From assembly GCA_040285825.1 (NCBI GenBank), contig JAUPSS010000014.1, forward strand, positions 128,337 through 192,336: a stretch of DNA of 64,000 bases. The letters are read 5' to 3'. The DNA is from Eukaryota sp. TZLM1-RC. Lineage: Eukaryota; Protista; Metamonada: BaSk clade. Shown here piece by piece: positions 8,560 to 64,000 of the stretch. Each line of letters begins with the position of its first letter. Within the stretch, counting starts at the first letter, position 1. A model generated the notes under the pieces. That model made no database searches and was not told where the DNA came from. It saw only the letters and a program-made list of their open reading frames with translations. The translations under genes and the position numbers were made by a program.

Positions 8560-11500
8560 TAAATTAAATCATAACTAATGGGACGACTATCATTAAACCA
8601 AGATTTCCTCTACAAAATCTTGATTTGCTTGCTGTCTAGCTAAAGCTTCTCTAATTCGATTGAAAAACCGCGGTAATCTATTAATAATGGCAAATTGAAT
8701 CCGTGAACGCCATAGAAAAATATCAAATCTTTTCATTGTTTTTTCTTTCACCATTTTTTGGAAGTCATCCAAAAAAGTTTCTGCTTCAACTGATAATCTT
8801 CCATTTATCGAAAATGGGAAAGCAATAAAAACCAGCTGTGTATTTCTATCGACATTTGCATCTTCAATTTCTTTATCATATTTTCTATGTTTTTCCTTTG
8901 CTTTAAAATCCAGAGCAGCCACAGGATTAAGTTTTCTTCTGTGAACCAAAGTATCGTTTGCAACATTACATGAGACAAAGTCAACAATAGCTTCAGAATT
9001 ATCAATCCAATCACAGTATACATCACCTCTATCATCAGAACCAAAATAATTCAGAGAAAGTGTTTCCTTCAGCAGGGGCTCTTTGATACACGATATCATT
9101 GCAGTTTGTGCCATATTGAAAACAGTGTATCTAACAGCATCATGTAATGAAGAACGATAAGTTATCAATTTAGAGCAATTTAGAGCATGGCGCAAAGTGA
9201 GTTGAGGTGAATTCGAACAAATACATTTTTCTTTTGATAATAATTGGTTAATGGGGATGTTCAAATATAATCTCATTTTTGTTACAAATGCTTCATTAGT
9301 GGCACACAATCCAAATCTTCGTGGTACAATGGTTACAAAAAGTGAAGAATCTGACGCCTTGTTTTCACAAACACCCTTTTCCAATAACAATGAGTGAAGA
9401 TCTTGATTTAAAACAGCCGAGCTGCAAATATTATTATAAAGATCTTTTTCATACATTCCAGTCAATCTTTTCTGTAATGTTCGAAGAGTGTACTTCAAAT
9501 TTAATACATTTTTTTCTGGAATATTGCCATTGAATGATTGGGGAAAACATCGACCCCATTTTTCTACATCAATTCTTGAAATTTCTTCATTTAATGCAAA
9601 AACTGTGGAACTTTGCGTTGTCATCAATAAATCTTCCCAATCTGCAAATCTTTCGAAAACTCAAAGATTGCATTTCTGCATCCACCAACAAAAGCACACG
9701 AGGTAAGAATAGAAGCCTTCGTCCACCCTAAACCACCATAATGTGGACTAAGGTAAGCATGATCTGGAATTTGAAACATTTTACATCCCAGTAATTGAGA
9801 CAGAACTTTTGCACGTAACTCATTAAACTTTTGAGCCAAAGGTCTAGTGACGAGAGGATTTGTAGATCGAAATATATGATTAAAATTGGAACTAAAACAC
9901 AGTCTTGTAATGGTAAATTTGATGTGTTTTTTTATATCTAAATTCATCATTCGGTCAATTTTGTCAGAAATTGAGTTCAACTTTTCAAACAATTTTTTGG
10001 TAATTTCATCATTATTTCCTAAAAACGAACCCAAATGACGAATAGCATCAATTGGATATAATTTGGCTTGAATTTCAATATCATCAATAATTGTGGAAAC
10101 TGGAGAATTCGATAACAAAACACATTTAAGTAAATTAAGTCGGAGACCAATTTTGGTAAATAATTCTTTAAAACATACAGTTGCTTTTTTCACAATATTT
10201 AAATCACCAATAAGCACAACATCATCCATATATGCAATCATTTTTAGTGAAGGAAACATCTCTTGAATTTGCAGTAGAATAGGATGGATGGCCAAACAAA
10301 ACAAAAGAGGTCCTAACGGATCTCCTTGCTTTACGCCACTTGATGAACTCAAAATGTTGTTACCAAAATGTAAATTAGAATATGTGCAATAAGTTGATTG
10401 AAAATATGGTATTAATTCCGGCATATATTGCAATAGAGCACCATGGATACTGCGACGACTTAGTGAATTGAAAGCATTACTAAAATCCAATGACATGCAA
10501 ACATTGAATTCATTTTGACGAAATAAGACATCAGTAGCAAAAATCGCTGAAATCGTGGTACAAGTTCAATACTTACTGCGGAAAGCTAATTTCGGACACA
10601 GTCAATTGCTCCTATGAATGAGCATAATTTGCAAACTATGGTTGGCAAATCTAAAATAGCAAAATACTCCGCAGATGAGAGAAATTTTCACCCATCAGTT
10701 GAACCAAGCAAGTCAGCAGCATCGGGTTTGGGCAAATTTCCAATACCTTTGTAATCGGAATAGTCACGAATCAATTAAGGAAGCCTTTTCAGGGGTATAT
10801 ACCTGGTGAATTGGTGATGAGAATAGGCCATCGTATGGACTGCAATTGGACTAATTCCGGAAGGCTTAGTATCACTACCAGGCTTCATGAAAGCAATAAG
10901 GCGTGTAGCAGTAAGCTCAGGGGGAGGAACAACTTTCAGTGAAACCAATTGTTGAAAATAAAAAGCTAAATCATCTGCAATTTCAGGTGTCTTGTCGCAA
11001 GCGGTTTTTGAAATATCAAGAGAAATTCCTGATAGTCCAGCGGCTTTACCATTTGGTAATTTTTTAATTAAAGCGGGAACTTCAGAAGCATTAATTGGAT
11101 TATTAGTCCAAAACTCACAAATATTGGGTTTTGGACAAACAAAATTTTCTTCAGGATGGAGCTTCTTAAATTTATCAACTGTATCAAGAGTTGGTTTAGC
11201 AATATCAGAGAAAACAAATGACTGAAGTCCGGCACCGTACCTTCTTCGAAGACATAGTTTTTTTTAATTGTTTGACTTTTTGCATCAGGTTAGACAGCAT
11301 TTTTGTTGACAAAAGATTTTTTTTGCAAAAAACTTTCCAAAAACTACTTATGTCCCATTCATTTTTCTTCAACTTACTTGTAAATAAACGAAGTTGAACA
11401 GACAATGGAATTGAAAAAGCAGGACTGACTTCAATAGGAATCTTGACTGGAGGTCTTAGAGTAACTTTTGCTTTACAGAATCGACAAAAAGGCAATGGTC

Positions 11501-14370: not shown

Positions 14371-14489
14371 GACTTTTCTTTACTACAATAGACTTTAGGC
14401 AACAATAATTATTGGCCATTTTAAAGTCAAAAGGTATACCGCAAATAACTTCAGTACTCAACAAAAAACCAGCAAACCGGATATGTTGA

Positions 14490-36054: not shown

Positions 36055-39000
36055 CTAAACACTGTGCTCTTCGTCTTCATCTTGTTTTGGTCTAACAAAC
36101 ACAACATAGATGCAAACAGCACAAGCCAAGAGCACAAACAACAACACTGCAACACTGACCAAAAATAGTGGTGAATTGACTGAAAAGAATGCACTGCCAT
36201 CAAAGGTAAAAGAAGCTGGCTGCCAATTGAAGCTTTCCTTTAACGAAAAGGACATTCCCTTTTTGGGCAACGACTCCTTCAAACTAATCGAAACCTCATC
36301 TCGGTCCAAGGTGCATTTCTTCAAAAGTTCGACTTCTTCAATCTCCACAATATCACTACAAGTAACTTCAATTGCTGTAGGAGTGAGAACACCATCAAAA
36401 AGCACCTTGATGAGCAAGGTATCCGAATAATAGGTTGCATCCACGACAGAGCTAACACTTTTGCAATAAGAATGCGGTATATGATCGGGACACTGGTCGA
36501 GGTTGTAGGTCTCGTGGTTTGCAGCAAAAGAGCTGGTACCTGAAGAATTGAATTTGACAATCAAGGGATATATTGACCAGAAATCCATGGAGTCCTGCAG
36601 CATTATAGAGTCAAAGTGAACCTCTTGACCTTTCCAGAGCCAGTATACATCCAATGAATCTCTTGAATCAAGATCACTTTGCAAATTAAGTTCAATAAGT
36701 GAATTGGAGTTGACTGGAAAGAAATAAACACAAGAGGCTAGATCACCCTGACTGTTTGAAACTTCAAAATCACCTTTAGTCTTGTCAATTACTGAATCAG
36801 TACAGACTGGGCTTGTACAATACTCCTTGTCTACATGTGGAGGACAATTGTCCCGATCAAAGTTGGAATATGAAACCTCAAAAGATAGTTCATTGTCACT
36901 TTGAGGGACTGAGATTACCAGCGGATGTAATGAGTACGCAAGATAATTAGAAACTGAGGTGATTCGGTCAAACAATAGATATTGGTCATCCCATCTCCAC
37001 AAAACATCAAGATGACCTACCTTCATGTTGATATCGGTAATGTTCAATTCAATTACGTGGTTGTCTAACAAGGGCAATACCCATGCACACTGCTCTACGC
37101 CAACTTTCACAGAGAAATTATACGTGAAATGATCACTGAGGTCCACATCTCCTCTACATGTAATTTCCTCTATTTCAGCAGGAATGTATTGATAGTCCAC
37201 TGAAAAGGAAGTTCCAGATGTGACTATTGAAGACACTTTGATTTCCTTAGTTGTCTCATGGGTACGGTTAGCAGAGGTATGAATGAGATCAATTTCTACA
37301 GGAGAATCATCACGTTCAACAATAGATATAAAATCATCGTTATTGACACTAATGGCCCTGATAGACAACAATAGTGAGTAATCCGGCACCGAAGGGAAAA
37401 GCCATTCAAAAGAGCAGCTGGTACTGTTGCCGGCAACACTCAAGGAGCCATTCAAATTATCAATAACATGTTGCTGTTGACAATTCAGATCCGTGTCTTC
37501 ATCAACCAAGTCCAATGAATAGCTCAATGTGAATGAGGAAAGGGGACTTGTGGAAACAAAAACAATAGACAATTGGTTGGCTGAGGTAACGGAGACATTA
37601 TCTTGGGTGACGTTGAAGGTTTGAAGAAAGAGTTCATCATCTGATTCCTCAATCACTTGAATAAGATCACCATCATGTAACACAATGTTGGTGAGATTGA
37701 GGGTTAATGAATCCTCTGGAGTAGGCAAGGTCCAATCACACAAATTGTGTCCATTAGACTTAATTGTGAACGAATCCTGAGATTTCTCCAAGACAATTCC
37801 TGGTTTACAAGTAGGCAATGGATCCTCTTCATCTTCTATATACCCACGACAATACTCAGAAGGAATATCAGGAGTACATTCATCTCTATGTACGTTGTGG
37901 TAACTCGCCTCAAAGGCAGAGTCATCAGATGCAGACACAAAGTGGAGGGATAGAGGGTGGAGTGAGTAAAACACCTCATGAGATGATGAACTGCTAATAC
38001 GTTGTAGAAGAAGGTAGTGATTGTCTCTCCATTTCCAATTAATGTCAACGTAGTCTCCCTCTTGAAGTTCAATGTCTGTAACATGAAGTTCAATAAGATG
38101 AGACTCTTCAAGAGGCATCTTCCAAGTGCAGTCAGCTACTCCAGCTGACTTAAAGGAGCCATCTGGCTCAGAGAGCTCTGTAAGAGCATCACACGTGGGC
38201 AATGGATCGTCTTCATCTTCTATATACCCACGGCAATACTCAGAAGGAATATCAGGAGTACATTCATCTCTATGTACGTTGTGGTAACTCGCCTCAAAGG
38301 CAGAGTCATCAGATGCAGACACAAAGTGGAGGGATAGAGGGTGGAGTGAGTAAAACACCTCATGAGATGATGAACTGCTAATACGTTGTAAAAGGAGGTA
38401 GTGATTGTCTCGCCATTTCCAATTAATGTCAACGTAGTCTCCCTCTTGAAGTTCAATGTCTGTAACATGAAGTTCAATAAGATGAGACTCTTCAAGAGGC
38501 ATCTTCCAAGTGCAGTCAGCTACTCCAGCTGACGCAAAGGAGCCATCTGGCTCAGAGAGCTCTGTAAGAGCATCACACGTGGGCAATGGATCCTCTTCAT
38601 CTTCTATATACCCACGACAATACTCAGAAGGAATTTCAGGAGTACATTCATCTCTATGTACGTTGTGGTAACTCGCCTCAAAGGCAGAGTCATCAGATGC
38701 AGACACAAAGTGGAGGGATAGAGGGTGGAGTGAGTAAAACACCTCATGAGATGATGAACTGCTAATACGTTGTAAAAGGAGGTAGTGATTGTCTCGCCAT
38801 TTCCAATTAATGTCAACGTAGTCTCCCTCTTGAAGTTCAATGTCTGTAACATGAAGTTCAATAAGATGAGACTCTTCAAGAGGCATCTTCCAAGTGCAGT
38901 CAGCTACTCCAGCTGACTTAAAGGAGCCATCTGGCTCAGAGAGCTCTGTAAGAGCATCACACGTGGGCAATGGATCGTCTTCATCTTCTATATACCCACG

Positions 39001-41181
39001 GCAATACTCAGAAGGAATATCAGGAGTACATTCATCTCTATGTACGTTGTGGTAACTCGCCTCAAAGGCAGAGTCATCAGATGCAGACACAAAGTGGAGG
39101 GATAGAGGGTGGAGTGAGTAAAACACCTCATGAGATGATGAACTGCTAATACGTTGTAAAAGGAGGTAGTGATTGTCTCTCCATTTCCAATTAATGTCAA
39201 CGTAGTCTCCCTCTTGAAGTTCAATGTCTGTAACATGAAGTTCAATAAGATGAGACTCTTCAAGAGGCATCTTCCAAGTGCAGTCAGCTACTCCAGCTGA
39301 CGTAAAGGAGCCATCTGGCTCAGAGAGCTCTGTAAGAGCATCACACGTGGGCAATGGATCGTCTTCATCTTCTATATACCCACGGCAATACTCAGAAGGA
39401 ATATCAGGAGTACATTCATCTCTATGTACGTTGTGGTAACTCGCCTCAAAGGCAGAGTCATCAGATGCAGACACAAAGTGAAGGGATAGAGGGTGGAGTG
39501 AGTAAAACACCTCATGAGATGATGAACTGCTAATACGTTGTAAAAGGAGGTAGTGATTGTCTCGCCATTTCCAATTAATGTCAACGTAGTCTCCCTCTTG
39601 AAGTTCAATGTCTGTAACATGAAGTTCAATAAGATGAGACTCTTCAAGAGGCATCTTCCAAGTGCAGTCAGCTACTCCAGCTGACGCAAAGGAGCCATCT
39701 GGCTCAGAGAGCTCTGTAAGAGCATCACACGTGGGCAATGGATCCTCTTCATCTTCTATATACCCACGACAATACTCAGAAGGAATTTCAGGAGTACATT
39801 CATCTCTATGTACGTTGTGGTAACTCGCCTCAAAGGCAGAGTCATCAGATGCAGACACAAAGTGGAGGGATAGAGGGTGGAGTGAGTAAAACACCTCATG
39901 AGATGATGAACTGCTAATACGTTGTAAAAGGAGGTAGTGATTGTCTCGCCATTTCCAATTAATGTCAACGTAGTCTCCCTCTTGAAGTTCAATGTCTGTA
40001 ACATGAAGTTCAATAAGATGAGACTCTTCAAGAGGCATCTTCCAAGTGCAGTCAGCTACTCCAGCTGACGCAAAGGAGCCATCTGGCTCAGAGAGCTCTG
40101 TAAGAGCATCACACGTGGGCAATGGATCCTCTTCATCTTCTATATACCCACGACAATACTCAGAAGGAATATCAGGAGTACATTCATCTCTATGTACGTT
40201 GTGGTAACTCGCCTCAAAGGCAGAGTCATCAGATGCAGACACAAAGTGGAGGGATAGAGGGTGGAGTGAGTAAAACACCTCATGAGATGATGAACTGCTA
40301 ATACGTTGTAAAAGGAGGTAGTGATTGTCTCGCCATTTCCAATTAATGTCAACGTAGTCTCCCTCTTGAAGTTCAATGTCTGTAACATGAAGTTCAATAA
40401 GATGAGACTCTTCAAGAGGCATCTTCCAAGTGCAGTCAGCTACTCCAGCTGACGCAAAGGAGCCATCTGGCTCAGAGAGCTCTGTAAGAGCATCACACGT
40501 GGGCAATGGATCCTCTTCATCTTCTATATACCCACGACAATACTCAGAAGGAATTTCAGGAGTACATTCATCTCTATGTACGTTGTGGTAACTCGCCTCA
40601 AAGGCAGAGTCATCAGATGCAGACACAAAGTGGAGGGATAGAGGGTGGAGTGAGTAAAACACCTCATGAGATGATGAACTGCTAATACGTTGTAGAAGAA
40701 GGTAGTGATTGTCTCGCCATTTCCAATTAATGTCAACGTAGTCTCCCTCTTGAAGTTCAATGTCTGTAACATGAAGTTCAATAAGATGAGACTCTTCAAG
40801 AGGCATCTTCCAAGTGCAGTCAGCTACTCCAGCTGACGTAAAGGAGCCATTTGGCTCAGAGAGTTCTGTAAGAGCATCACAGTTCGAAATGAAACCCTTT
40901 GACTCTACCAAATTGAAGCCAGAAAGCTTCTTGGAAAAACGCAAGTTATGCGTCTCTAACCATTCAAGGAAAGCAGGTTCTGCATAAACAAGGCTGTGTG
41001 TCCCTGAATACCCCCCAAGCTGGAAACTGTTTGGTGGAGGAGCTTCATCTATTTCAGAAACAAGTTTCCAGTCTATAAGAAGACTATGCTGAAAGCCAGC
41101 AACATAACCAAGAAGTAAAACAATGAATAAGTGATTCAAACGCATTGAGAAAAGATAAGAAAATGTCGAATGATTGAACAT
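36055..41181 (-). CDS. Large type-I membrane protein with tandem CUB-like domains
   Basis: Signal peptide (MRLNHLFIVLLLGYVAG), repeated C...G.F......C.W......I.L....I.L..GD....L.F.S...F...Y CUB-like pattern, C-terminal TM helix and short acidic tail. Confidence 0.85.
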   Translation of the reverse strand: MFNHSTFSYLFSMRLNHLFIVLLLGYVAGFQHSLLIDWKLVSEIDEAPPPNSFQLGGYSGTHSLVYAEPAFLEWLETHNLRFSKKLSGFNLVESKGFISNCDALTELSEPNGSFTSAGVADCTWKMPLEESHLIELHVTDIELQEGDYVDINWKWRDNHYLLLQRISSSSSHEVFYSLHPLSLHFVSASDDSAFEASYHNVHRDECTPEIPSEYCRGYIEDEEDPLPTCDALTELSEPDGSFASAGVADCTWKMPLEESHLIELHVTDIELQEGDYVDINWKWRDNHYLLLQRISSSSSHEVFYSLHPLSLHFVSASDDSAFEASYHNVHRDECTPDIPSEYCRGYIEDEEDPLPTCDALTELSEPDGSFASAGVADCTWKMPLEESHLIELHVTDIELQEGDYVDINWKWRDNHYLLLQRISSSSSHEVFYSLHPLSLHFVSASDDSAFEASYHNVHRDECTPEIPSEYCRGYIEDEEDPLPTCDALTELSEPDGSFASAGVADCTWKMPLEESHLIELHVTDIELQEGDYVDINWKWRDNHYLLLQRISSSSSHEVFYSLHPLSLHFVSASDDSAFEASYHNVHRDECTPDIPSEYCRGYIEDEDDPLPTCDALTELSEPDGSFTSAGVADCTWKMPLEESHLIELHVTDIELQEGDYVDINWKWRDNHYLLLQRISSSSSHEVFYSLHPLSLHFVSASDDSAFEASYHNVHRDECTPDIPSEYCRGYIEDEDDPLPTCDALTELSEPDGSFKSAGVADCTWKMPLEESHLIELHVTDIELQEGDYVDINWKWRDNHYLLLQRISSSSSHEVFYSLHPLSLHFVSASDDSAFEASYHNVHRDECTPEIPSEYCRGYIEDEEDPLPTCDALTELSEPDGSFASAGVADCTWKMPLEESHLIELHVTDIELQEGDYVDINWKWRDNHYLLLQRISSSSSHEVFYSLHPLSLHFVSASDDSAFEASYHNVHRDECTPDIPSEYCRGYIEDEDDPLPTCDALTELSEPDGSFKSAGVADCTWKMPLEESHLIELHVTDIELQEGDYVDINWKWRDNHYLLLQRISSSSSHEVFYSLHPLSLHFVSASDDSAFEASYHNVHRDECTPDIPSEYCRGYIEDEEDPLPTCKPGIVLEKSQDSFTIKSNGHNLCDWTLPTPEDSLTLNLTNIVLHDGDLIQVIEESDDELFLQTFNVTQDNVSVTSANQLSIVFVSTSPLSSFTLSYSLDLVDEDTDLNCQQQHVIDNLNGSLSVAGNSTSCSFEWLFPSVPDYSLLLSIRAISVNNDDFISIVERDDSPVEIDLIHTSANRTHETTKEIKVSSIVTSGTSFSVDYQYIPAEIEEITCRGDVDLSDHFTYNFSVKVGVEQCAWVLPLLDNHVIELNITDINMKVGHLDVLWRWDDQYLLFDRITSVSNYLAYSLHPLVISVPQSDNELSFEVSYSNFDRDNCPPHVDKEYCTSPVCTDSVIDKTKGDFEVSNSQGDLASCVYFFPVNSNSLIELNLQSDLDSRDSLDVYWLWKGQEVHFDSIMLQDSMDFWSIYPLIVKFNSSGTSSFAANHETYNLDQCPDHIPHSYCKSVSSVVDATYYSDTLLIKVLFDGVLTPTAIEVTCSDIVEIEEVELLKKCTLDRDEVSISLKESLPKKGMSFSLKESFNWQPASFTFDGSAFFSVNSPLFLVSVAVLLFVLLACAVCIYVVFVRPKQDEDEEHSV
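37811..40882 (-). repeat. Eight near-identical 384-bp (128-aa) coding tandem repeats
   Basis: Alternative-frame ORFs recur exactly every 384 bp (37836 to 40524); only a few variable positions per unit. Confidence 0.95.
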
Positions 41182-45911: not shown

Positions 45912-46661
45912 TTACATGTTGAATAACAAAACTATAATAACAACCATTAATAAACAAATACAACACAACCTTCCTCTTTCTTTATGCTTTACAAGCTTAC
46001 TCAACTGTTTGTTGGTCTTATCCAGAAGAAGCCTTGTTCTTGACATATTCTCATCAAGATCATCTAGCATATAAGCCTGATCATCAAGTTCGTATTGAAT
46101 CTCTCTTCCCATGTCATGTAGTGTCCTAACAGATGTTCCTAATTGTTGTAGAGTGGAGTCTTCCTGTTGTTTAATGGTTGATTGTCGTTGTTTCTCCATA
46201 TTAGTTATAAATTCATCATTTTCACGTTCATCCTCATGCTTGAGCCATTCAGAACCCGTCCTTACTGCTTCCTGCCGTTGTCGACGGTCAGATTCAAGCT
46301 TCTTGGCTTCGGCTCGTTGTTCTTCCAAGTATTTGTCTAGTCTGTCTTTGGCTGTGGATAACTGATGTTCTAGTCGTTCAATTTGGTTATTAACAGATAC
46401 TACAAAAGACTTGCGTTCACTTAATATATCATGAGTAATTGAAGGAAAGCGGGACAAGTCAGCAGAGACGATGTCGTTTGTCTGTTGAAGCACTTCTACA
46501 TCTTCTTGACACGACTCTATTATTGAACGCAGACGTTTAAGTGGTGGAGAAAGATCTGACGTTGGTGTAACAGAAAGGGTTTCAGAAAGGGAATGTGCAG
46601 ATTCAATAGCACTTTGTACTTCTTCTTTAACAAGGTCAAAAGGGTCTGTTTTAGAGTCCAT
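45912..46661 (-). CDS. STX6: Syntaxin-6/Tlg1-like Qc-SNARE
   Basis: DPFDLVKEEVQ N-terminus, SNARE motif (L..MG.EI..ELDDQ..MLDDLD), C-terminal TM anchor. Confidence 0.88.
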   Translation of the reverse strand: MDSKTDPFDLVKEEVQSAIESAHSLSETLSVTPTSDLSPPLKRLRSIIESCQEDVEVLQQTNDIVSADLSRFPSITHDILSERKSFVVSVNNQIERLEHQLSTAKDRLDKYLEEQRAEAKKLESDRRQRQEAVRTGSEWLKHEDERENDEFITNMEKQRQSTIKQQEDSTLQQLGTSVRTLHDMGREIQYELDDQAYMLDDLDENMSRTRLLLDKTNKQLSKLVKHKERGRLCCICLLMVVIIVLLFNM

Positions 46662-46673
46662 TATAAGAAATAT

Positions 46674-47230
46674 TGTTTACAATAATGGAATAAGTGACCT
46701 CTAAAAAAGGATTGGGTTTTATGGAGGTAGATTTTTCTTTCCTTGGCACTCTGTAGATATAACGTTTTATCTCCATAATTTGAATGTTCCAACTCATTTA
46801 TTGAAACATTTTTATGACTCTGAGGTCCTGAGGGGTTCAGAATTTCTGCTATTGACTGCATTCATCATGAGTCCTTGACCCGTATATTTAAGCGCGGTTC
46901 GTGCCCCTTTTTTTAGTTTTCATTAAAAACTTTGTGCTACTCTCAATCAAGACGTTCCCAAGAGAACCATGAAAATTTCTCGCAAGGAAGATTTCAAAAA
47001 AATAGATTATCACAGTATCAAGACCTCCATCAATTTTCAGGCTGGTTGTTTCTTGAGATACGCTGCCACTATTTTGGTTTTGGAGTATTCAAACAGATAA
47101 AGTTTTTTCAATAATAATTGTTCGCTTGGAATATTTGAAAACTATTTCAATTCTGTGATGAAAGTTTCATTATAGGCTAACAATCAACTGAATTTTGGAA
47201 AGTTTGTTTACAGTCATTCTGGCACAAATT
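46674..47230 (-). pseudogene. Decayed Fanzor 3' relic with right-end motif
   Basis: Terminal motif similar to 49327 and 60203; remnants GLM-CSQ*QKF* and NVSIN...GDKTLYLQ parallel HGL.C..C...W and N.S.N...RP.YL. Confidence 0.5.
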
Positions 47231-48720: not shown

Positions 48721-49314
48721 TTAAATGTTTTTATTCTCAGCAGCCATTAAAAACCTTTTTACTTTTGGTATTTTATCATACTCAAAGGTTATTCCCTTCT
48801 CAGACAATATAGAAGTAAGTTCATTTTTCACTTCCTCTGATCTTTCCTCAGTACATTCGCATTCAATTCCATAGTGGCTGTAACCTGGAAAAGTTACATC
48901 ATCAACTTCAATCTTTTCCTTCAAAACATTCTCATATATTCTTCTAACATTAGTGAATGAACCAAGAGATAACATTGTATGAGCAGAAACATCAGGAATA
49001 TGGTTTTGTATGAAAGAATCTGCCTTCATAAGTGGAGGGTTTTCCAAGTAATTGGTTGCCTCACTTGATAGTATGACAGACTCAAACTCCTGGGATCTCA
49101 TTATACCCCCTTCGAAGGTTGTTCCCTTCTTTATGGTTAGGAAAGCTGTTGATTCTTTTGTTGAATCATCTACTTCGATGCGCAGTCGAATTAGCTGGTC
49201 TCCAGCCTTGAAAAAGTGGTTAGTCTGTGATACGGTTTTGTTTGGCTTAGGAAGAACTGCAAGAAGTTTTACAAAGTCATCTTTGTTGATAGAAAGCTTA
49301 AGTTCTATTTCCAT
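48721..49314 (-). CDS. CYTH/triphosphate tunnel metalloenzyme
   Basis: N-terminal EIELK (ExExK), Q.NHFF, IRLR, LTIK, GSF.N.R, IEVD and IECE. Confidence 0.88.
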   Translation of the reverse strand: MEIELKLSINKDDFVKLLAVLPKPNKTVSQTNHFFKAGDQLIRLRIEVDDSTKESTAFLTIKKGTTFEGGIMRSQEFESVILSSEATNYLENPPLMKADSFIQNHIPDVSAHTMLSLGSFTNVRRIYENVLKEKIEVDDVTFPGYSHYGIECECTEERSEEVKNELTSILSEKGITFEYDKIPKVKRFLMAAENKNI

Positions 49315-49326
49315 TGTTAAAGAGCT

Positions 49327-50100
49327 TGCCTATAACTATGGAATAAGTGTCCTCTTTACACCAATGTAGAAGGGTGAGTTTTTTTGGAATATTTTCTCAA
49401 ACCTGCACATGATTTTCACCTGATGAAGTACATGTGACGACTTTATTCTGCTTTAGTGTACTTTGAAAATTTATTATTAATAGAGTTGCGCTATTTTTCC
49501 AGTTTTACTTATCCAATTTGTTTAGAAAGGGTCAATGTCGCATGCTATGTTTGACAAACAAAAATACACCTCAACCCTGCTAGTAGATTTGCCATTTTTA
49601 GATACACTTATACCCCAAAAATTGCTCAGCTCCTCTTGTTTGCAATAGTTGTTTTTCTTTTTCTTTATTTTTACAGTGGTTTTGTCTGTATTGGTTCAAG
49701 CACATAGTGTCCATGCATTGCCGCCGAGTGCACTCATCAATTCAGGCCTTTTATCATTTTTTTGTCAAACCTTTTCCTTTAGTGGCTGCTTTGATTTTAG
49801 TTTGTATTTAATTCTATCATCTTAATTATCCAAGTACATTGAGTAATCAATGTCTTGGGGGATATTCATTTCTCGAGGTGCTTCACTTCTTGATGACCTA
49901 TCAGTGATTGTATTAATTAATTATTGTTTATATCCACCCATTGGTGTTGAGTTACATAAAATTCGTTATCCAAGACATCAATCACCTTGTTACTAGAGCT
50001 GCTTATTCTTATGAAAGCGACAATTGTACACTGTATTCTTTCAAATTTGTTACTTTTTGACTCAAATCTTTGGTTTTTTTAACTGTCTGACTTTTATATC
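49327..50100 (-). pseudogene. Internally deleted Fanzor relic, same family as 60203-63660
   Basis: QRFESKSNKFERI vs QRFESKSSKFKRI; RSEAPREMNIPQDIDYS vs RGEVPQEINIPHEIDYS; TKGKGL..IDE; shared ~55-nt terminal motif. Confidence 0.8.
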
Positions 50101-53807: not shown

Positions 53808-55109
53808 CTAAACTTTTTTTCCCACACTCGCTGATCGTTGCAGTACCATTGGTCTACAATTATCATGAATATGAGAGTACCTAATCCTGTACATCTTCAG
53901 AGCACTGGTCACATCCCTATCCCAATAGACGCCACATTCACTGTTTTGACAGTGTAGCAGTCCATGGCATGGGGCTAGTTTGACATTGCCTATTTGTTGA
54001 AGTTCTTGAATTTTGTTAACATTTTGAATAGAATCAACTTCATAATCCTGGTTTTCAGTCACTCGCAAGTCATTCTTTAACCTCTTCTTCTTACGTTTGA
54101 ATCTTTTATAGGCATTTGGATCTTTGACCTTTACGTCGAATTTTGGTATCTCCTTTGTGATGATCCTCAGCACAAGCAGCACATCTCTTACTGGTACGAT
54201 ACTCGTCTACCAAGTATACTTTTATACCAGCTTTTCTCAGAATTTTTCTTAGCCCCACACCTTTTATTGTGCTTGCTTTAGCTTTACGATTGGTCTTAGT
54301 GTCCCAATCACCAAAACCAATTACAATATTTTGGACATCATCCTTCAACTTAGCGTTGTTTGAATGAATGCTTGCCATAAATGATAGAGTGACTTTTCAA
54401 AGAGGGCAATTTTAAACTGTTTGATGTTATGTTTAGCCAAATAGTCTGGTTGATAAATTTTCAGGCAATTATCAAAATTATAGATCATTGAAAGTTCATG
54501 TGGAAATAAACGAACAAAAGTATCTGAAAAATCATCAGATGAAAGAAAGCAGATTATAATCAGTGGAAGCCACAAAAATGAGTTTCTGTTTGTTAATTAA
54601 TTTTGAAACCTTTGAGTGAAATTCCGCAATGACCACACAGATAAGTGTGATTGCATCTCTTCTAAATGAAACTTCATGTGGCTTTGAGAAAATCTTTGTC
54701 TTTTGATTCTCAATTTCCTTAATGTGGCCTACTGTTGTTAATTTTTGTTCTAAAAAATAAATCTTGGCATCAATTTCTGATCTTTTAGAATTAGTAATTG
54801 AATTGACAACAATTTGATTGTCTTTTTTAACTAATGTTGTTTTTGAGTTGTCTTTTTGATACTCAAAAGTGACCAAATATCTTCTAACATTTCTAATGAT
54901 TTAAGATCATTAATTTGCTCGGTAGTTTCATCCATATGTAGATCTTCATGTGGAAAAGACTCAATAATAGAATCTCGTGGGTCAGTCTCAAATGGCTCTG
55001 AAGTCATACGAGGTTTTCTAGTCTTTGGAGCAACATTAGAAGCTCTACCTCTAGAATTTGTTTTATGTTTGGTAGTATCAGAAGTAGTTGATTTACGTTT
55101 AGGTGACAT
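53808..55109 (-). mobile_element. Internally deleted Fanzor element: basic N-terminus, PolB-exonuclease-like region, Fanzor C-terminus
   Basis: IGFGDW, KG.GLRK.LRKAG..VYLVDEYRTSKRCAAC, HGLLHC...C...WDRDVTSA and RP.VL.R; upstream MSPKRKS and FPHELSMIYNF..CLKIYQPDYLAKHNIKQF. Confidence 0.85.
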
Positions 55110-58809: not shown

Positions 58810-60186
58810 TCAACGTCCTGGACGACCTCTAGATTTGTTTTTACATGCAGAACAGACAGATTCTCTAGTTTTCAACCCTAAATTATAAAAACTCTGTAAA
58901 ATAAATTCCTGCTCCAAAGTACTGGCCATTGAAGCATTTTCAGAGGCTTTTCTTAATTCATTCCTTTCTTTTTCTAAATCCAAATAACTTGAAAGTAACG
59001 TATTATACTTAGTTATTACTTCTTTCAGTTTCTCTTTATTAGTTTGGTAAGCAGAACAGACTTTTCCATATTTGATTTCCAATTGGTCAAAATTTGGATT
59101 TGAATTTTGTTGTTTTCCATTGTTTACATCAGTAATTTTCTGCTTTAATTGTTCATTTTCCTTTGATAAATCGTTGTTAGTCTTTTTTAATAATTCTATT
59201 TGATCCAAATATTCAGAATTTTGGACAATAGACTGTTCATATCTGACTTCCAGATCATCAAGGTCACGTGATAAACGGTCAAAAACCTCTTGATTAATTG
59301 AATCATATTGAACTTCCGTCTGCAACTCTTGATGAACACCACGTTTTTTTGATTTATATTGAAACAAATCAATTTCAGATTCTAAATTATGTTTTTCAAA
59401 AACTAAATTGTCAATTTTTTCCTTTAATAAATCTATTTCGCTTTCATAACCAAATTTTTCTTCACTTGTCAATCGGTCAACAGAAATCTCATGACATCGA
59501 CAATTATTGAGCTGATCTTCTAGAATATTGACCTTTTCAACAAGCGACTGATTGATTGATTCAAGTTGCTCGTTGGTGTTGTTCATCTCCTGTATATCAC
59601 TTTGAGCTTTATTAAAAGCCTTCTTCAACTCCTCGTGATCTCTAATCGTCACTGACATGTCAAACACTTGTTCTCTTAAATTTTTAACAGACTTTTTTAA
59701 TGGTCTGAGTTCAAGAACCTCACTTTCAAGATTAATACGCTTTTCCCTTTCACTTCTTAACATTTCTGTTAATGAATCGATTTCTTTGTTCTCCAATACC
59801 CTGGTTTGTGACTTGACAAGCATAGACTTGGTCAGAGGAGGAGATTGTTGAAAGGAGAGGTTTGAACAACGAGGAAGAGAAGGAGAGGAGGGGAGGGAGA
59901 CCGGAGAATCAGCAGGTTGAAGAAAGGACATGAGGGAAGCTTGAACATCAGAGGGTAAAGTTAAGATGTGACTGATGTTGGTGTGCTTTAAAGGTCCATT
60001 GATTGCAGTATGGAGAAGAGCGACAGCCAATGTGTAGGAATCATCAACATTATGTGGTGGTGTTGAAGAGGGATCAACTTTGCTCCATATAGAATTTAAA
60101 ATACTTGGATGTAGAAGATCATCAAGAGAATGTATTGTATGTGAGGTTTCTATAGAATTTATCCATATCAAGAGATGAGAAGACAT
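58810..60186 (-). CDS. Hook-like coiled-coil adaptor
   Basis: N-terminal L.WI.S CH-like domain ending I.TL...VQ..LM, long coiled coil, C-terminal EQEFI.QSFYNLG Hook-like motif. Confidence 0.65.
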   Translation of the reverse strand: MSSHLLIWINSIETSHTIHSLDDLLHPSILNSIWSKVDPSSTPPHNVDDSYTLAVALLHTAINGPLKHTNISHILTLPSDVQASLMSFLQPADSPVSLPSSPSLPRCSNLSFQQSPPLTKSMLVKSQTRVLENKEIDSLTEMLRSEREKRINLESEVLELRPLKKSVKNLREQVFDMSVTIRDHEELKKAFNKAQSDIQEMNNTNEQLESINQSLVEKVNILEDQLNNCRCHEISVDRLTSEEKFGYESEIDLLKEKIDNLVFEKHNLESEIDLFQYKSKKRGVHQELQTEVQYDSINQEVFDRLSRDLDDLEVRYEQSIVQNSEYLDQIELLKKTNNDLSKENEQLKQKITDVNNGKQQNSNPNFDQLEIKYGKVCSAYQTNKEKLKEVITKYNTLLSSYLDLEKERNELRKASENASMASTLEQEFILQSFYNLGLKTRESVCSACKNKSRGRPGR

Positions 60187-62247
60187 TCATTCATACAGAT
60201 GATGTCTACAACTAAGAAATAGGTGTCCTTTTTACACTGATGTGGAGGGACTGAGTTTTTGAGAGGTGGAAGATTTTCTTCTTGATACCGTTTTCTTTGA
60301 ACCTTCAAGGTATCTCCACCTTTTACATGTGCTTCCATCACTACCAACATATTCAGCGAAGCATTTCGATCTCTATTCCACAAACTTTCGCATGATTTAC
60401 ACATGGTAAGCCCGTGACGAATAGACATCTCATGCCTCTTCCATGGCCTAGGATTTCTGCACCATCGGAATGCTTCAACTGTTTTCTCCGCTTTCTTACA
60501 ATTGAAACAACATCAACTGGTTCGAAACTCATCAATCAAACAGACCTTATAACCAGCCTTTTTAAATAAAATTCTCAAACCTTTTCCTTTGGTAGGTTCT
60601 TTGAATTTCATGTGTTTTCGTTGTTCTCAGTCTCCAATTCCGATAACTACTTGGCTGGGATCACCAATTACTGATTTGAATCTCTGAATCATCTTTGCCT
60701 CAGATCTTGTGCGATTAATCTCAGCCCACCATCTTAGTTTCCTAAATATTTCTTGATAATAGACTTGACCAACAATACTATTCACATAATTCTTTTGTTT
60801 AATATACTCCATAAATCTATCAAACCTGCAGTTTTTGAAATTGAATTGGGATAAAGTCGCTTCCCATTCTGCTACAGATTTAGTTTTTGTTCATTGTTTC
60901 TCAAATTAAATGAGTAATCAATTTCGTGGGGAATATTGATTTCTTGAGGTACTTCACCTCTTAATAAACTAATTGTTCTTTCAGTCATTTGATTAATTAT
61001 ACTGCTGCTTAAATCCATCCTTTGTTGTTTCTCTTCAGATGGTTCATAATTGGATAGATCAATCACTCTACCAGAAGAGTTACTTATTGTGATAAGAGTG
61101 TCATTACGTATGATGTCTCTTATTCTTTTGAATTTGGAACTTTTCGATTCAAATCTTTGTTTTTATTGAGTGTACCTGAAATGAACATACTAATCTCTCT
61201 CAGGTTTTTTGAATGAGTCATTCTAGTAGCTAAATTGGCAGAAAAATAGAGTAGATCAGATTTACCTGGATTAGCAGCAGCAAGGGTCATATCATGAAAT
61301 TGAGAAGGATTGACATCATGGTCATCGATTTGTCTCCTACTTTCAATTCTTTTCCAGCTACCTAATTTCGTCTCAAGTCCATTCTAGATTGAATGAACGT
61401 TATTGCTACTCAATCAGTCTTTATGCTAGAGATGATGTACTTTGAACTTTCTAAATCAACTTGTGTTTTTGTGTTTTTTATCTCGTCCATTTTCAAATAG
61501 GTGTTCCAAAGATCCAAATCAGCAGCTTGATCATTACATTGATAAGACGACCTTTGACCAAGAATGTCCGTGAATTCGCCAAAGTACAAGTCCAATAAAC
61601 TTGTCTTGTCAATTCTAATATATGATGGAATACAAGAATTCTTCAAAGGCAGAGCATAAAAGAGTTTGCTCTTCTCAACTTCTGAATAGTTATTAATACA
61701 CAACAATGCTCTCAAACACAAACTTGATTTTGACAGAAAAATCTTTGAATATTTTTCCCTTTTAGTAGTAGGAAGTAAATGAGGGATACGGGTCATTAAT
61801 TAAAAGCGAACTAATCGACGAGACTTTTTTTTCTCATTTCAGATGTTTCACCATCAATAATTCTACATCCTTCTAGAAGTACAGATTTAATTGTACTAAT
61901 AAATGATGAAAAGTTTTTCTTATTCTGCTGTTTCAGAACGTTATTGTTTCTTTTTAGATTATAGAATACATCACCAAACCAATCCAAGTAATCAAGGTAA
62001 TGCTCTTGGATGGTATTTTAAAATTTGCAATCAGTTTGTCAATTGTGTAATACAAAATATTACTTATGCCTTGTTTTAATAAAACTTTTGTTTTTAAAAT
62101 GTTGGTGATAGAATTCCAACAATGGCGCAGAACGAAGATTTTGTAAAGATTTTGTTTTTGTTCTTGGGCTAAGGGAACTTTCCTCCTCACTTTGAGATGT
62201 CACCACAAGAAAAGCGTCACGAAATAATTGCTTTTCAATTTTGGTAA

Positions 62248-62898
62248 CCTTTGAGTCTGATGGTGTAATCAAAGTTGTTGAAGTTGTCACTGTTGATGTT
62301 TGTAAGGATTCAGCAATTGATTTTGCCGATAAAGATGAAACTCCGCTCTGCTTTGCTGAAAAGAGCCAAATCAAAAAGTGCAATGAACCCTTATCTCAGC
62401 TAGGATGTGTTGAGCATGTCAAGTATCAGCTGGTTCCATTTATTTGCTGTTTCTCTTTTTGGTGACATTGGAATTTCTGGCATTAAATTTCTCAAAGGTT
62501 TCAGAAGTTTATTAAAAGAAAGAACGGTAAAAGAATGGAACTTTAATTTCTGGCACAACAGAATTGTTTTCAGTATACTTAAAGCAATTCCCGAAATGAT
62601 AACCAAAGCACTGTTACAATTAGGTATAGAATACGAGAATCGCGCATTGAAAAGTTTTGATGATGATGATGCTTGTATTGAGGAAATTGAGTTCTAGTGA
62701 TGCTGTTAGGCAAATGAACACACGAAAGAAAGTGAGTAATCAAAGTTTATTAATAAAACTGATTCATAGACGAGTATCACGTCATCAGTCGAAATACAAC
62801 GAAACCTACTAAATCAATTTAAGTTCAACATCAACACTAGTATTTTTGTTTAATGTTTTGTTAGCGTTGAAAACAGAAAAGTGCGTAAGTAAAACAAC
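62248..62898 (+). mobile_element. 5'-truncated CRE-type element (fourth family) inserted in the Fanzor ORF
   Basis: VTVDVC, SLFGDIG and FWHNRIVFSILK RLE tail; flanked by TTTTGGTAA at 62239-62247 and 62899-62907. Confidence 0.8.
62698..62836 (-). repeat. Solo LTR of the 19664 family
   Basis: Similar to the reverse complement of 19664-19802 over 139 bp; 4-bp TSD CTAG on both sides. Confidence 0.9.
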
Positions 62899-63714
62899 TT
62901 TTGGTAAAATATTATTAGAGTGTAAGTCAAGAAGATGCAAATAATAACCACAAATGAATTCTAAACCAACAATAGAAATTTCCTGACACCTAATTACTGC
63001 CTCATCGATCACTTCAATCATTTTCGGATCTCTGATGACATTTTTTAGACTGTCCCTTTAACCATCATAAAATTTATGTTTAACAGTTTCCATAAATTGG
63101 TCATTGTTGAAGAAAATAAATAATTTCATGGTTAAATCTGTATCCCCCAGACAATAAACTGCTACTGCAGTTCTTCTTTGGGATAAGAAAAATCTGAGAA
63201 GGAATCATCTCCTTGAACCTTCCAATACGTTGCAATATACTGAGGCTCAAGGTCAATTTTATTTTCCATTAATAGAATTTTAGAAACTGTGTTTAGTTTG
63301 CGTGGTTCATAATAATTTCTGTAAATACTAAAAGTATTAACAACAAATCGACCAGCAATAAATAGCTTCAAGTGTTTGTGATTCAATTCTATTAAATTTG
63401 TAGTATAGAATTGAATTCATTCACTAGCATCGATTTCATCTTTAAAAAAGTCCTCATTTTCAGAACGTTTCATAAAATGTGGGGTGCTAAATTGGACAAT
63501 ACTGAAACCACATATTATATGAGATTGTAAGTTTCTAGTAATTGTTTAAATGAACTTAGCAACTCATTTTCGGAGGAATGATGATAAATCTTGGTTCTCT
63601 AAGATAAGATCTGAACAACAAATAGCCAAAAATAATAATGACCCTTTATTCGAAAATGCAATTCTAGATGAAAACAGTCAAAATTAAAAAATAATCAGAA
63701 TAAAATTTTAATTT

Positions 63715-64000
63715 CAATTAGCCTCAGGAAACAGACACTGTTATTAGTACAGGGTTTAGTGTTAATCTGGCCACCCCAACAAGAACGTTTTTAGACAAAC
63801 TGTCCAAAAGTGATTTTTACTGGGTCAAAATGAGAAAGAACCATATAAATCATGTCCAGAGTTGTTCAATTTGTCAAAAAACGGCTCCAGTAAAAAGATC
63901 TAAAACACCTTCCACAGGATCTCTATGGGCAGATCGTCCGTTTGTAAGATTGAAAGTCGATACAATTGGACCCCTGAACACCGACAACGAAGGAAACAAA
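63715..64000 (+). mobile_element. Ty3/Gypsy integrase fragment running off the window
   Basis: DFYWVKMRK...CSICQKTAP...GSLWADRPF.RL.VDTIGPL, paralleling the integrase at ~26800-27000. Confidence 0.85.

Follow-up and report, generated by a model that had tools for sequence, protein, structure and literature searches.

A repeated Skoliomonas element in which a polymerase-type proofreading exonuclease precedes a Fanzor1 nuclease, very likely within a single gene

Fanzors are eukaryotic RNA-guided nucleases that are being developed as compact genome editors, and their natural role in the transposons of eukaryotes is still unclear. The Fanzor1 proteins SpuFz1, PpFz1 and GtFz1 are eukaryotic homologues of TnpB and, like the element described here, they contain a RuvC triad and a zinc ribbon. 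Engineered exonuclease fusions have become an established way of altering editing outcomes, and in the laboratory such fusions impaired one Fanzor, MmeFz2 (PMC12923547), so a benefit of tethering is not a given. A natural fusion to an exonuclease, a polymerase or a protease is not mentioned in the main Fanzor papers (PMC10432273, PMC10530073, PMC10711439, PMC3627910), nor is an exonuclease fusion mentioned in a paper on TnpB diversity (PMC10691335), and titles and abstracts dealing with Fanzor and exonuclease, Ulp1, DEDD or Metamonada revealed nothing alike; the coverage of the literature was incomplete, and this is an absence of evidence only. Within the limits of such a search, no description of the natural combination of an exonuclease with a Fanzor came to light.

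The combination was found in the genome of Skoliomonas sp. TZLM1-RC (GCA_040285825.1), a strain that was characterised together with other isolates when the anaerobic metamonad genus Skoliomonas was described (PMC11603281). The window, by which we mean the whole stretch of 64,000 nucleotides that was analysed, corresponds to positions 128337-192336 of contig JAUPSS010000014.1. Its minus strand harbours, between 63586 and 60187, the relic of an Exo-Fanzor gene that is a member of a repeated element family, referred to as family A below. The features of this copy and of its immediate surroundings are listed here in window coordinates.

63830-64000, plus strand: remnant of an LTR-retrotransposon integrase, outside the element, which marks the cut-off
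63518-63598, minus strand: exonuclease segment before ExoII, with the E.ELL..F motif helix at its end (from translation)
63420-63545, minus strand: ExoII segment in a different frame, degenerate, GFSIVQFS as compared to GFNILKFD in sister copies (from copy alignment)
63417-63419, minus strand: in-frame TGA stop within the exonuclease
63165-63416, minus strand: middle of the exonuclease, AGRFVV ... KLNTVSKILL, an 84-residue piece that served as the query of the searches
63061-63204, minus strand: ExoIII segment, YCLGDTD and the following helix, in a third frame (the equivalent residues of the L004 copy align to ExoIII of Pol delta)
63058-63060, minus strand: TAA stop, at a spot where sister copies have a Tyr codon
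62896-63057, minus strand: conserved linker from the exonuclease to the Fanzor core, in the frame of ExoIII, homologous across families A and B
62252-62895, plus strand: fragment of a LINE (non-LTR) element in the opposite orientation, which interrupts the gene (blastn to the LINE in L001 13491-13964; ORF 62407-62697)
60188-62247, minus strand: Fanzor1 core with many stops and shifts (blastn, 86% to L005 12329-14426)
60630-60632, minus strand: RuvC-I Asp
60528-60530, minus strand: RuvC-II Glu
60369-60371, minus strand: RuvC-III Asp
60187-60235, minus strand: conserved 3' end of the element, followed by host ORF 58810-60186 (ATG at 60186)

The original prediction had read exonuclease blocks on the minus strand across two frameshifts and a stop, and translation of 63598-62812 confirmed this reading. 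The first frameshift separates the segment before ExoII (63518-63598) from the ExoII segment (63420-63545), and the second lies between the middle of the exonuclease (63165-63416) and the ExoIII segment (63061-63204). The prediction also placed a single TAA at 63058-63060 with the same frame continuing behind it, and this held as well, with the frame that carries ExoIII reading on past the stop through 63057-62812. The label that had been given to the residues at this position, the Fanzor N-terminus, was imprecise. When compared to an ordinary Fanzor-type protein of 591 residues, canonical Fanzor1 homology starts about 110 residues past ExoIII, and the TAA consequently falls in a linker and not in the Fanzor N-terminus proper; in the window, the canonical N-terminal homology begins near 62100.

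Homology to family A starts at 63586 (blastn against L001, L002, L004, L005 and L011), which is the 5' cut-off of the window copy, and ExoI is missing because this cut-off lies downstream of it. A candidate ExoI near 63910-63950 was ruled out, as this stretch is the antisense of the retrotransposon integrase remnant, the core of which is read in ORFs of the opposite strand (L003 5884-6357). The ExoII motif has Ser in place of its Asn and its Asp. A LINE-free version is represented by one public read-contig that joins 62243 to 62903; the two public sequencing runs, which stem from one sample, are stored as contigs and include none recorded as RNA, show further copies. The window copy is thus a dead relic, which lacks its 5' part, contains an inserted LINE fragment, has lost its ExoII catalytic residues and is interrupted by several stops and frameshifts. 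As a separate observation, the window copy (63586) and the copy at L004 (9882-9887), located 60 kb apart on one contig, are truncated at a nearly identical internal position, and they have no common flank either upstream or downstream. Coincidence, a fragile site or the spread of an already shortened copy are all conceivable here.

The window alone could not prove the presence of an exonuclease, because its pieces, which are short and decayed, match nothing in Pfam or in the PDB when searched singly. A language-model feature search of the ESM Atlas assigned the 84-residue piece to DNA_pol_B_exo1 clusters (0.95, 178 shared features, 19/30 matches). A HMMER search with the same piece against 1.8 billion representative proteins retrieved only P0001 and P0002, which are 72-73% identical to it and both originate from assembly GCA_040285825.1. 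No polymerase was retrieved among these 1.8 billion proteins at E values up to 0.001, which argues against a recent origin of the exonuclease from a polymerase gene of the host or a virus.

The identity of the domain rests on the sister copies, which are 86-91% identical in DNA to the exonuclease stretch of the window, exceed the gathering cut-off of Pfam DNA_pol_B_exo1 (PF03104, 23 bits) and match Pol delta. The scores are 57.5 bits for P0126, 57.3 for the 648-codon frame of L009, 32.7 for P0002 and 26.3 for an ORF of L001, and the two best matches (E about 2e-15, the better one 1.7e-15) extend from model position 63/64 to 240 of 242. The L004 frame matches residues 307-463 of yeast Pol delta (3iay) with an E value of 2.7e-9, and further structure matches include human Pol delta, E. 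coli Pol II and herpesvirus polymerases. The ExoI motif (DxE) is found as FDIE in L001, L002, L005 and P0126, ExoII (Nx(2-3)[FY]D; NILKFD in sister copies) is present in L001, L002, L004, L005 and P0126 and aligns to the Pol delta motif, and ExoIII (Yx(3)D) is read as YCLxD in the window, L001, L004, L005 and P0126, with His replacing the Tyr in L002. By our own count, 113 residues separate ExoI from ExoII in family A and 117 separate ExoII from ExoIII; the Exo motif spacing of Pol delta is roughly 86 and 113, which is close to these values. The statistical support for ExoI is limited to its coverage by the Pfam match, since the ExoI piece of P0004 alone gave no match in the PDB, and AlphaFold2 models calculated without alignments provided no fold evidence of our own (mean pLDDT of 29 and 36 for P0004 and the 340-codon frame of L004). 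The polymerase palm, fingers and thumb domains are absent after the exonuclease, where the Pfam and PDB matches end behind ExoIII and are followed by the linker and Fanzor. These findings establish that the sister copies contain a PolB-type, Pol delta-like 3'-5' proofreading exonuclease domain without a polymerase, while its activity and substrate are inferred from the motifs only.

The C-terminal half of the family A element is a complete Fanzor1, for which RNA-guided cleavage and an omegaRNA are inferred. The C-terminal frame of L005 matches PpFz1 (Parasitella Fanzor1, 9cf0) and SpuFz1 (Spizellomyces Fanzor1, 8gkh) with E values of 3.2e-22 and 1.1e-18, respectively, and scores 30.1 bits against Pfam Cas12f1-like_TNB (PF07282), above the cut-off of 26.3. 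Among Fanzor-type proteins, this L005 frame shares 50-57% identity with metagenomic ones and 48% with those of the chytrid Batrachochytrium. The C-terminal piece of the window gives a weak Cas12f1-like_TNB match, and its matches in the PDB are only SpuFz1 and PpFz1. The RuvC Asp-Glu-Asp triad and a C4 zinc ribbon between RuvC-II and RuvC-III are present in both the window and L005 when aligned to PpFz1 and SpuFz1, the zinc ribbon being readable in the window, where the stop of the gene lies at 60168-60170, and a WNRD motif is common to the C-terminal half of the element and the Fanzor1 proteins.

Other Fanzor sequences were noticed in the same genome. L001 4083-5996 (minus strand) holds a Fanzor of ordinary length that belongs to another family, in two ORFs of 299 and 318 residues and without a noticed exonuclease domain, which indicates that ordinary Fanzors are also present in TZLM1-RC. 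More divergent Fanzor relics occur in the window at 49311-50086 (minus strand) and at 54190-54264; short stretches of them are 68-77% identical to family A in DNA.

The comparison of copies included the window and ten further loci that were reached through annotated protein fragments, and together they provide 12 family A places, two of which are in L007; one copy of a second family, family B, is also part of the set. According to protein searches, the TZLM1-RC genome contains at least about 25 annotated fragments or copies of family A. The copies compared are 86-96% identical in DNA and reside beside unrelated host genes. The order of exonuclease and then Fanzor is observed in 8 of the 12 places, at unrelated host positions, and the remaining four are truncated within the Fanzor part. 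The recurrence bears on the possibility that a Fanzor element landed by chance in or beside a family-B polymerase pseudogene of the host or of a giant virus. Taken alone, the window could be read in this way, as it presents a single broken copy beside other transposon debris. The junction recurs, however, in eight places next to different host genes and once more in family B, and no polymerase palm or fingers sequence is found on either side of it. Segmental duplication of a single locus does not rescue the explanation, because the flanks of the copies differ, and a chance arrangement is all but excluded.

The fullest copy is L005 (9977-14431), which spans about 4.45 kb without a large insertion. 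A single frame path can be followed in it, which opens with the ATG at 10001, ends with the stop at 14381-14383 and covers approximately 1,460 codons that are interrupted by three point stops and two frameshifts, and it encodes, in this order, an unknown N-terminal domain, a putative Ulp1/C48-like protease, the PolB-type exonuclease and Fanzor1. Two of the three stops align unambiguously with L009, where they are sense codons (AGA and TAT); the third sits at a frameshift, where L009 reads AAA. An alternative genetic code as the source of the in-frame stops was ruled out on the basis of the two unambiguous positions. Stop-free frames that connect the exonuclease with the Fanzor part have a length of 340 codons in L004, 450 in P0126 and 648 in L009, and the last of these includes the protease, ExoI to ExoIII and the linker, up to the first canonical Fanzor1 homology. 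At the other end of the protein, P0004 is an open frame of 491 residues that contains the N-terminus, the protease and ExoI, and in L001 the protease shares its frame with the exonuclease, interrupted only by one stop behind FDIE.

An intact gene was found in none of the 12 family A places, and a full-length protein is not predicted in the databases, although the length filter of the protein searches excludes proteins of about 1,460 residues. When family A copies are compared with each other, most pairs have a dN/dS of about 0.4-0.65 in the exonuclease (range 0.37-1.0), and the RuvC part has 0.13-0.47. These values are compatible with constraint on both the exonuclease and RuvC in an active lineage, the signal of which is weakened by the neutral decay of copies once they have been inserted.

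The protease domain of family A, which lies upstream of the exonuclease in the same frame, is less firmly identified. An ORF of L001 matches Pfam C48 with only 18 bits (E 0.0027), a weak score below the cut-off of 20.7, and P0004 has no Pfam C48 match. In the ESM Atlas, 28/30 matches fall in Peptidase_C48 (features 0.95), a structure search with the Atlas's own model against C48 clusters gave a TM of 0.65, and the motifs HW, FD and Q..DCG, which would correspond to a His-Asp-Cys triad and the Gln of the oxyanion hole, can be seen by eye. We regard the domain as a putative Ulp1/C48-like cysteine protease, which Pfam does not confirm above its cut-off. The N-terminal region of about 190 residues has no recognisable relatives, and a basic linker that resembles a nuclear localisation signal connects the protease to the exonuclease.

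Family B provides an independent view of the same architecture. Its element occupies L009 4369-7133, just upstream of the family A copy of that locus, and its product, P0127, has 503 residues and begins directly with ExoI (FDLE), without a protease domain. P0127 scores 34.4 bits with DNA_pol_B_exo1, above the cut-off of 23, its ExoIII reads YGLYD and all three Exo motifs are kept. The C-terminus is a Fanzor that is 30% identical to that of family A (E 1e-18). The two families are colinear over their whole length, and they align over 374 residues with 21% identity (E 2e-9), from before ExoII, across the junction and into the N-terminal region of Fanzor. The same order and a homology that spans the junction, at only 21-30% identity, imply that the fusion of exonuclease and Fanzor predates the split between families A and B, and the retention of this order together with the Exo catalytic motifs further implies that the fusion is old and has been kept by selection. 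Three frameshifts and one stop make the family B copy itself a pseudogene.

A different feature of family B is found at the RuvC-III position, where Asn occupies the place of the catalytic Asp (FNRNK) and the three Exo motifs are intact. Family B is possibly a cleavage-altered Fanzor which relies on its exonuclease.

The main competing view of the junction holds that exonuclease and Fanzor are two adjacent, separately translated genes of one mobile element, and that their continuity is an accident of decay. Stops or frameshifts do occur somewhere in every copy, and the genome annotation divides each copy into several small genes, both of which would agree with this view. Against it, the frames of 340, 450 and 648 codons mentioned above extend from ExoIII into the Fanzor part in three independent copies, there is no intergenic spacer, families A and B align straight over the junction, and both of the unambiguously aligned stops of L005 are sense codons in L009. 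We consider the two-gene explanation very unlikely. The domain identities, their order in a single frame and the conservation of exonuclease and Fanzor, without the protease, in the divergent family B are shown, and the best overall explanation, which has been inferred from sequence without RNA data and in which we place high confidence, is that a single gene of about 1,460 codons makes up nearly the whole element. Present-day production of the fusion protein is not established, as all of the compared copies are broken and there are no RNA data.

Viewed against these results, the central inference of the original prediction, namely that the ancestral element encoded one Exo-Fanzor protein, is supported by the order of domains in 8 of 12 places, by the open frames and by family B. 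Its assignment of the exonuclease blocks to ExoII-ExoIII of Pol delta and PolB holds by way of the sister copies, the ExoII of the window itself being degenerate; likewise, the Pfam DNA_pol_B_exo1 search that it proposed gave nothing with the short window pieces, and the sister copies pass the cut-off. It had also proposed a search for intact copies with the exonuclease and RuvC in one ORF, of which there are none among the 12 places, and long open frames nevertheless cross the junction. The absence of an upstream exonuclease domain from family members would have refuted it, and every copy that reaches that far has the exonuclease. The claim has to be extended by the in-frame N-terminal Ulp1-like protease of family A, and the remark that such an architecture was not known to have been described is consistent with the Fanzor literature that was searched, incomplete as it was.

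Regarding function, a mechanism may be proposed in which Fanzor, guided by an omegaRNA derived from the 3' end of the element, would cut the target DNA, and the tethered exonuclease would then shorten the 3' ends that are produced. Such trimming could block precise re-ligation and bias repair towards copying of the element-bearing template, or it might process the ends in some other way. The putative protease could strip SUMO-like modifiers off proteins of repair or chromatin in the vicinity of the break; alternatively, it may cleave the polyprotein.

It is also possible that the fusion is real, but that the exonuclease serves as a nucleic-acid-binding scaffold, an omegaRNA trimmer or a transposition factor instead of trimming the cut. 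The dN/dS of the exonuclease (about 0.5) exceeds that of RuvC, and DEDD-type nucleases are known accessory proteins of P and piggyBac transposons (as cited in PMC3627910), both of which speak for a role of this kind. A separate transposase gene is absent from the 4.45 kb unit, and something else must therefore move the element. On the other hand, both families retain the catalytic residues (Asp, Glu, Asp, Tyr and Asp) in spite of an identity of 21%, which favours catalysis over mere binding, and the closest relatives of the domain are DNA proofreading domains rather than RNA exonucleases.

A separate set of observations concerns the 3' ends of the elements, which are constant, as opposed to the 5' ends, which are variably truncated. 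In all 13 copies and remnants, the conserved 3' end (...TCTGTTTCA in most copies) is located where an annotated host gene of the same strand begins, and it abuts the ATG in 11 of them; the ATG follows four bases later in the window copy and thirteen bases later in L004. The 3' ends are positioned as follows.

Window: 60187 and 49315
L001: 15977
L002: 19681
L004: 14082
L005: 14423
L006: 9903
L007: 8130 and 2752
L008: about 8268
L009: 11061
L010: 7418
L011: 7931

The divergent relic at 49311-50086 ends at the ATG of ORF 48721-49314, and a solo remnant of about 40 bases that resembles the 3' end of the element is found at 46662-46701 on the minus strand of the window, directly before the ATG of ORF 45912-46661. 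A short GTGT...ACAC inverted repeat is visible in the conserved 3' end. The idea that the 3' end motif is a general promoter of this genome was rejected, as most genes of the window are without it. Two readings are suggested by the constant 3' ends at the start of host genes: the element may insert at position -1 of start codons, or it may persist only at sites to which its end contributes a promoter or leader. The guide RNA might then begin with the first codons of the host gene, a suggestion for which there are no expression data. The surrounding genes also include unusual content, in particular an open frame of 1,708 residues with abundant CUB-domain matches at 36055-41181 (minus strand of the window), which is unusual for a metamonad, and a hybrid histidine kinase at L003 898-3235, past the end of the window, which is unusual for the lineage.

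A bolder reading, to be regarded as speculative, would combine all of the above: the elements would encode natural multi-enzyme RNA-guided nucleases, each with a Fanzor in permanent union with a proofreading-type exonuclease and, in one family, with a SUMO-type protease, whose extra domains would act on the cut ends and on nearby repair factors and thereby decide the course of repair, with insertion or survival exactly at position -1 of start codons, a 3' end that acts as promoter or leader and host first codons that serve as the guide.

If a Fanzor has indeed been joined to a DNA end-trimming enzyme in both families, the Skoliomonas lineage would offer the first sign that evolution has coupled guided cutting to end processing. 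The natural fusion would represent a ready design to be compared with engineered exonuclease fusions, the results of which were mixed, and it would provide a handle on the purpose of Fanzor cuts, such as homing or repair bias, in a deep-branching protist. The placement at start codons, if confirmed, bears on how elements choose their sites or survive at them.

With respect to known systems, the Exo-Fanzor gene of Skoliomonas resembles Fanzor1 in being multi-copy and situated among transposon debris, and differs from it by approximately 450 (family B) to 850 (family A) additional N-terminal residues, which are enzymatic. With the PolB proofreading domains of Pol delta, Pol II and herpesvirus Pol it has the ExoI DxE, ExoII NxxxFD and ExoIII YxxxD motifs in common, but the polymerase domain is absent and the N-terminal domain of polymerases nearly so, the fusion partner is a nuclease, and the identity to any polymerase is about 30% at best. 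Accessory enzymes of these two types are also carried by other mobile elements, which have classical transposases (PMC3627910), whereas in Skoliomonas they are fused to an RNA-guided nuclease. A parallel in principle is provided by engineered fusions of TREX2 or T5 exonuclease to Cas9, Cas12 or Fanzor (PMC12923547), in which a non-specific exonuclease is likewise tethered to a programmable nuclease in order to alter the outcome at the cut. These constructs are man-made and employ other exonuclease families, whereas the Skoliomonas fusion is natural, old and derived from a polymerase proofreading domain.
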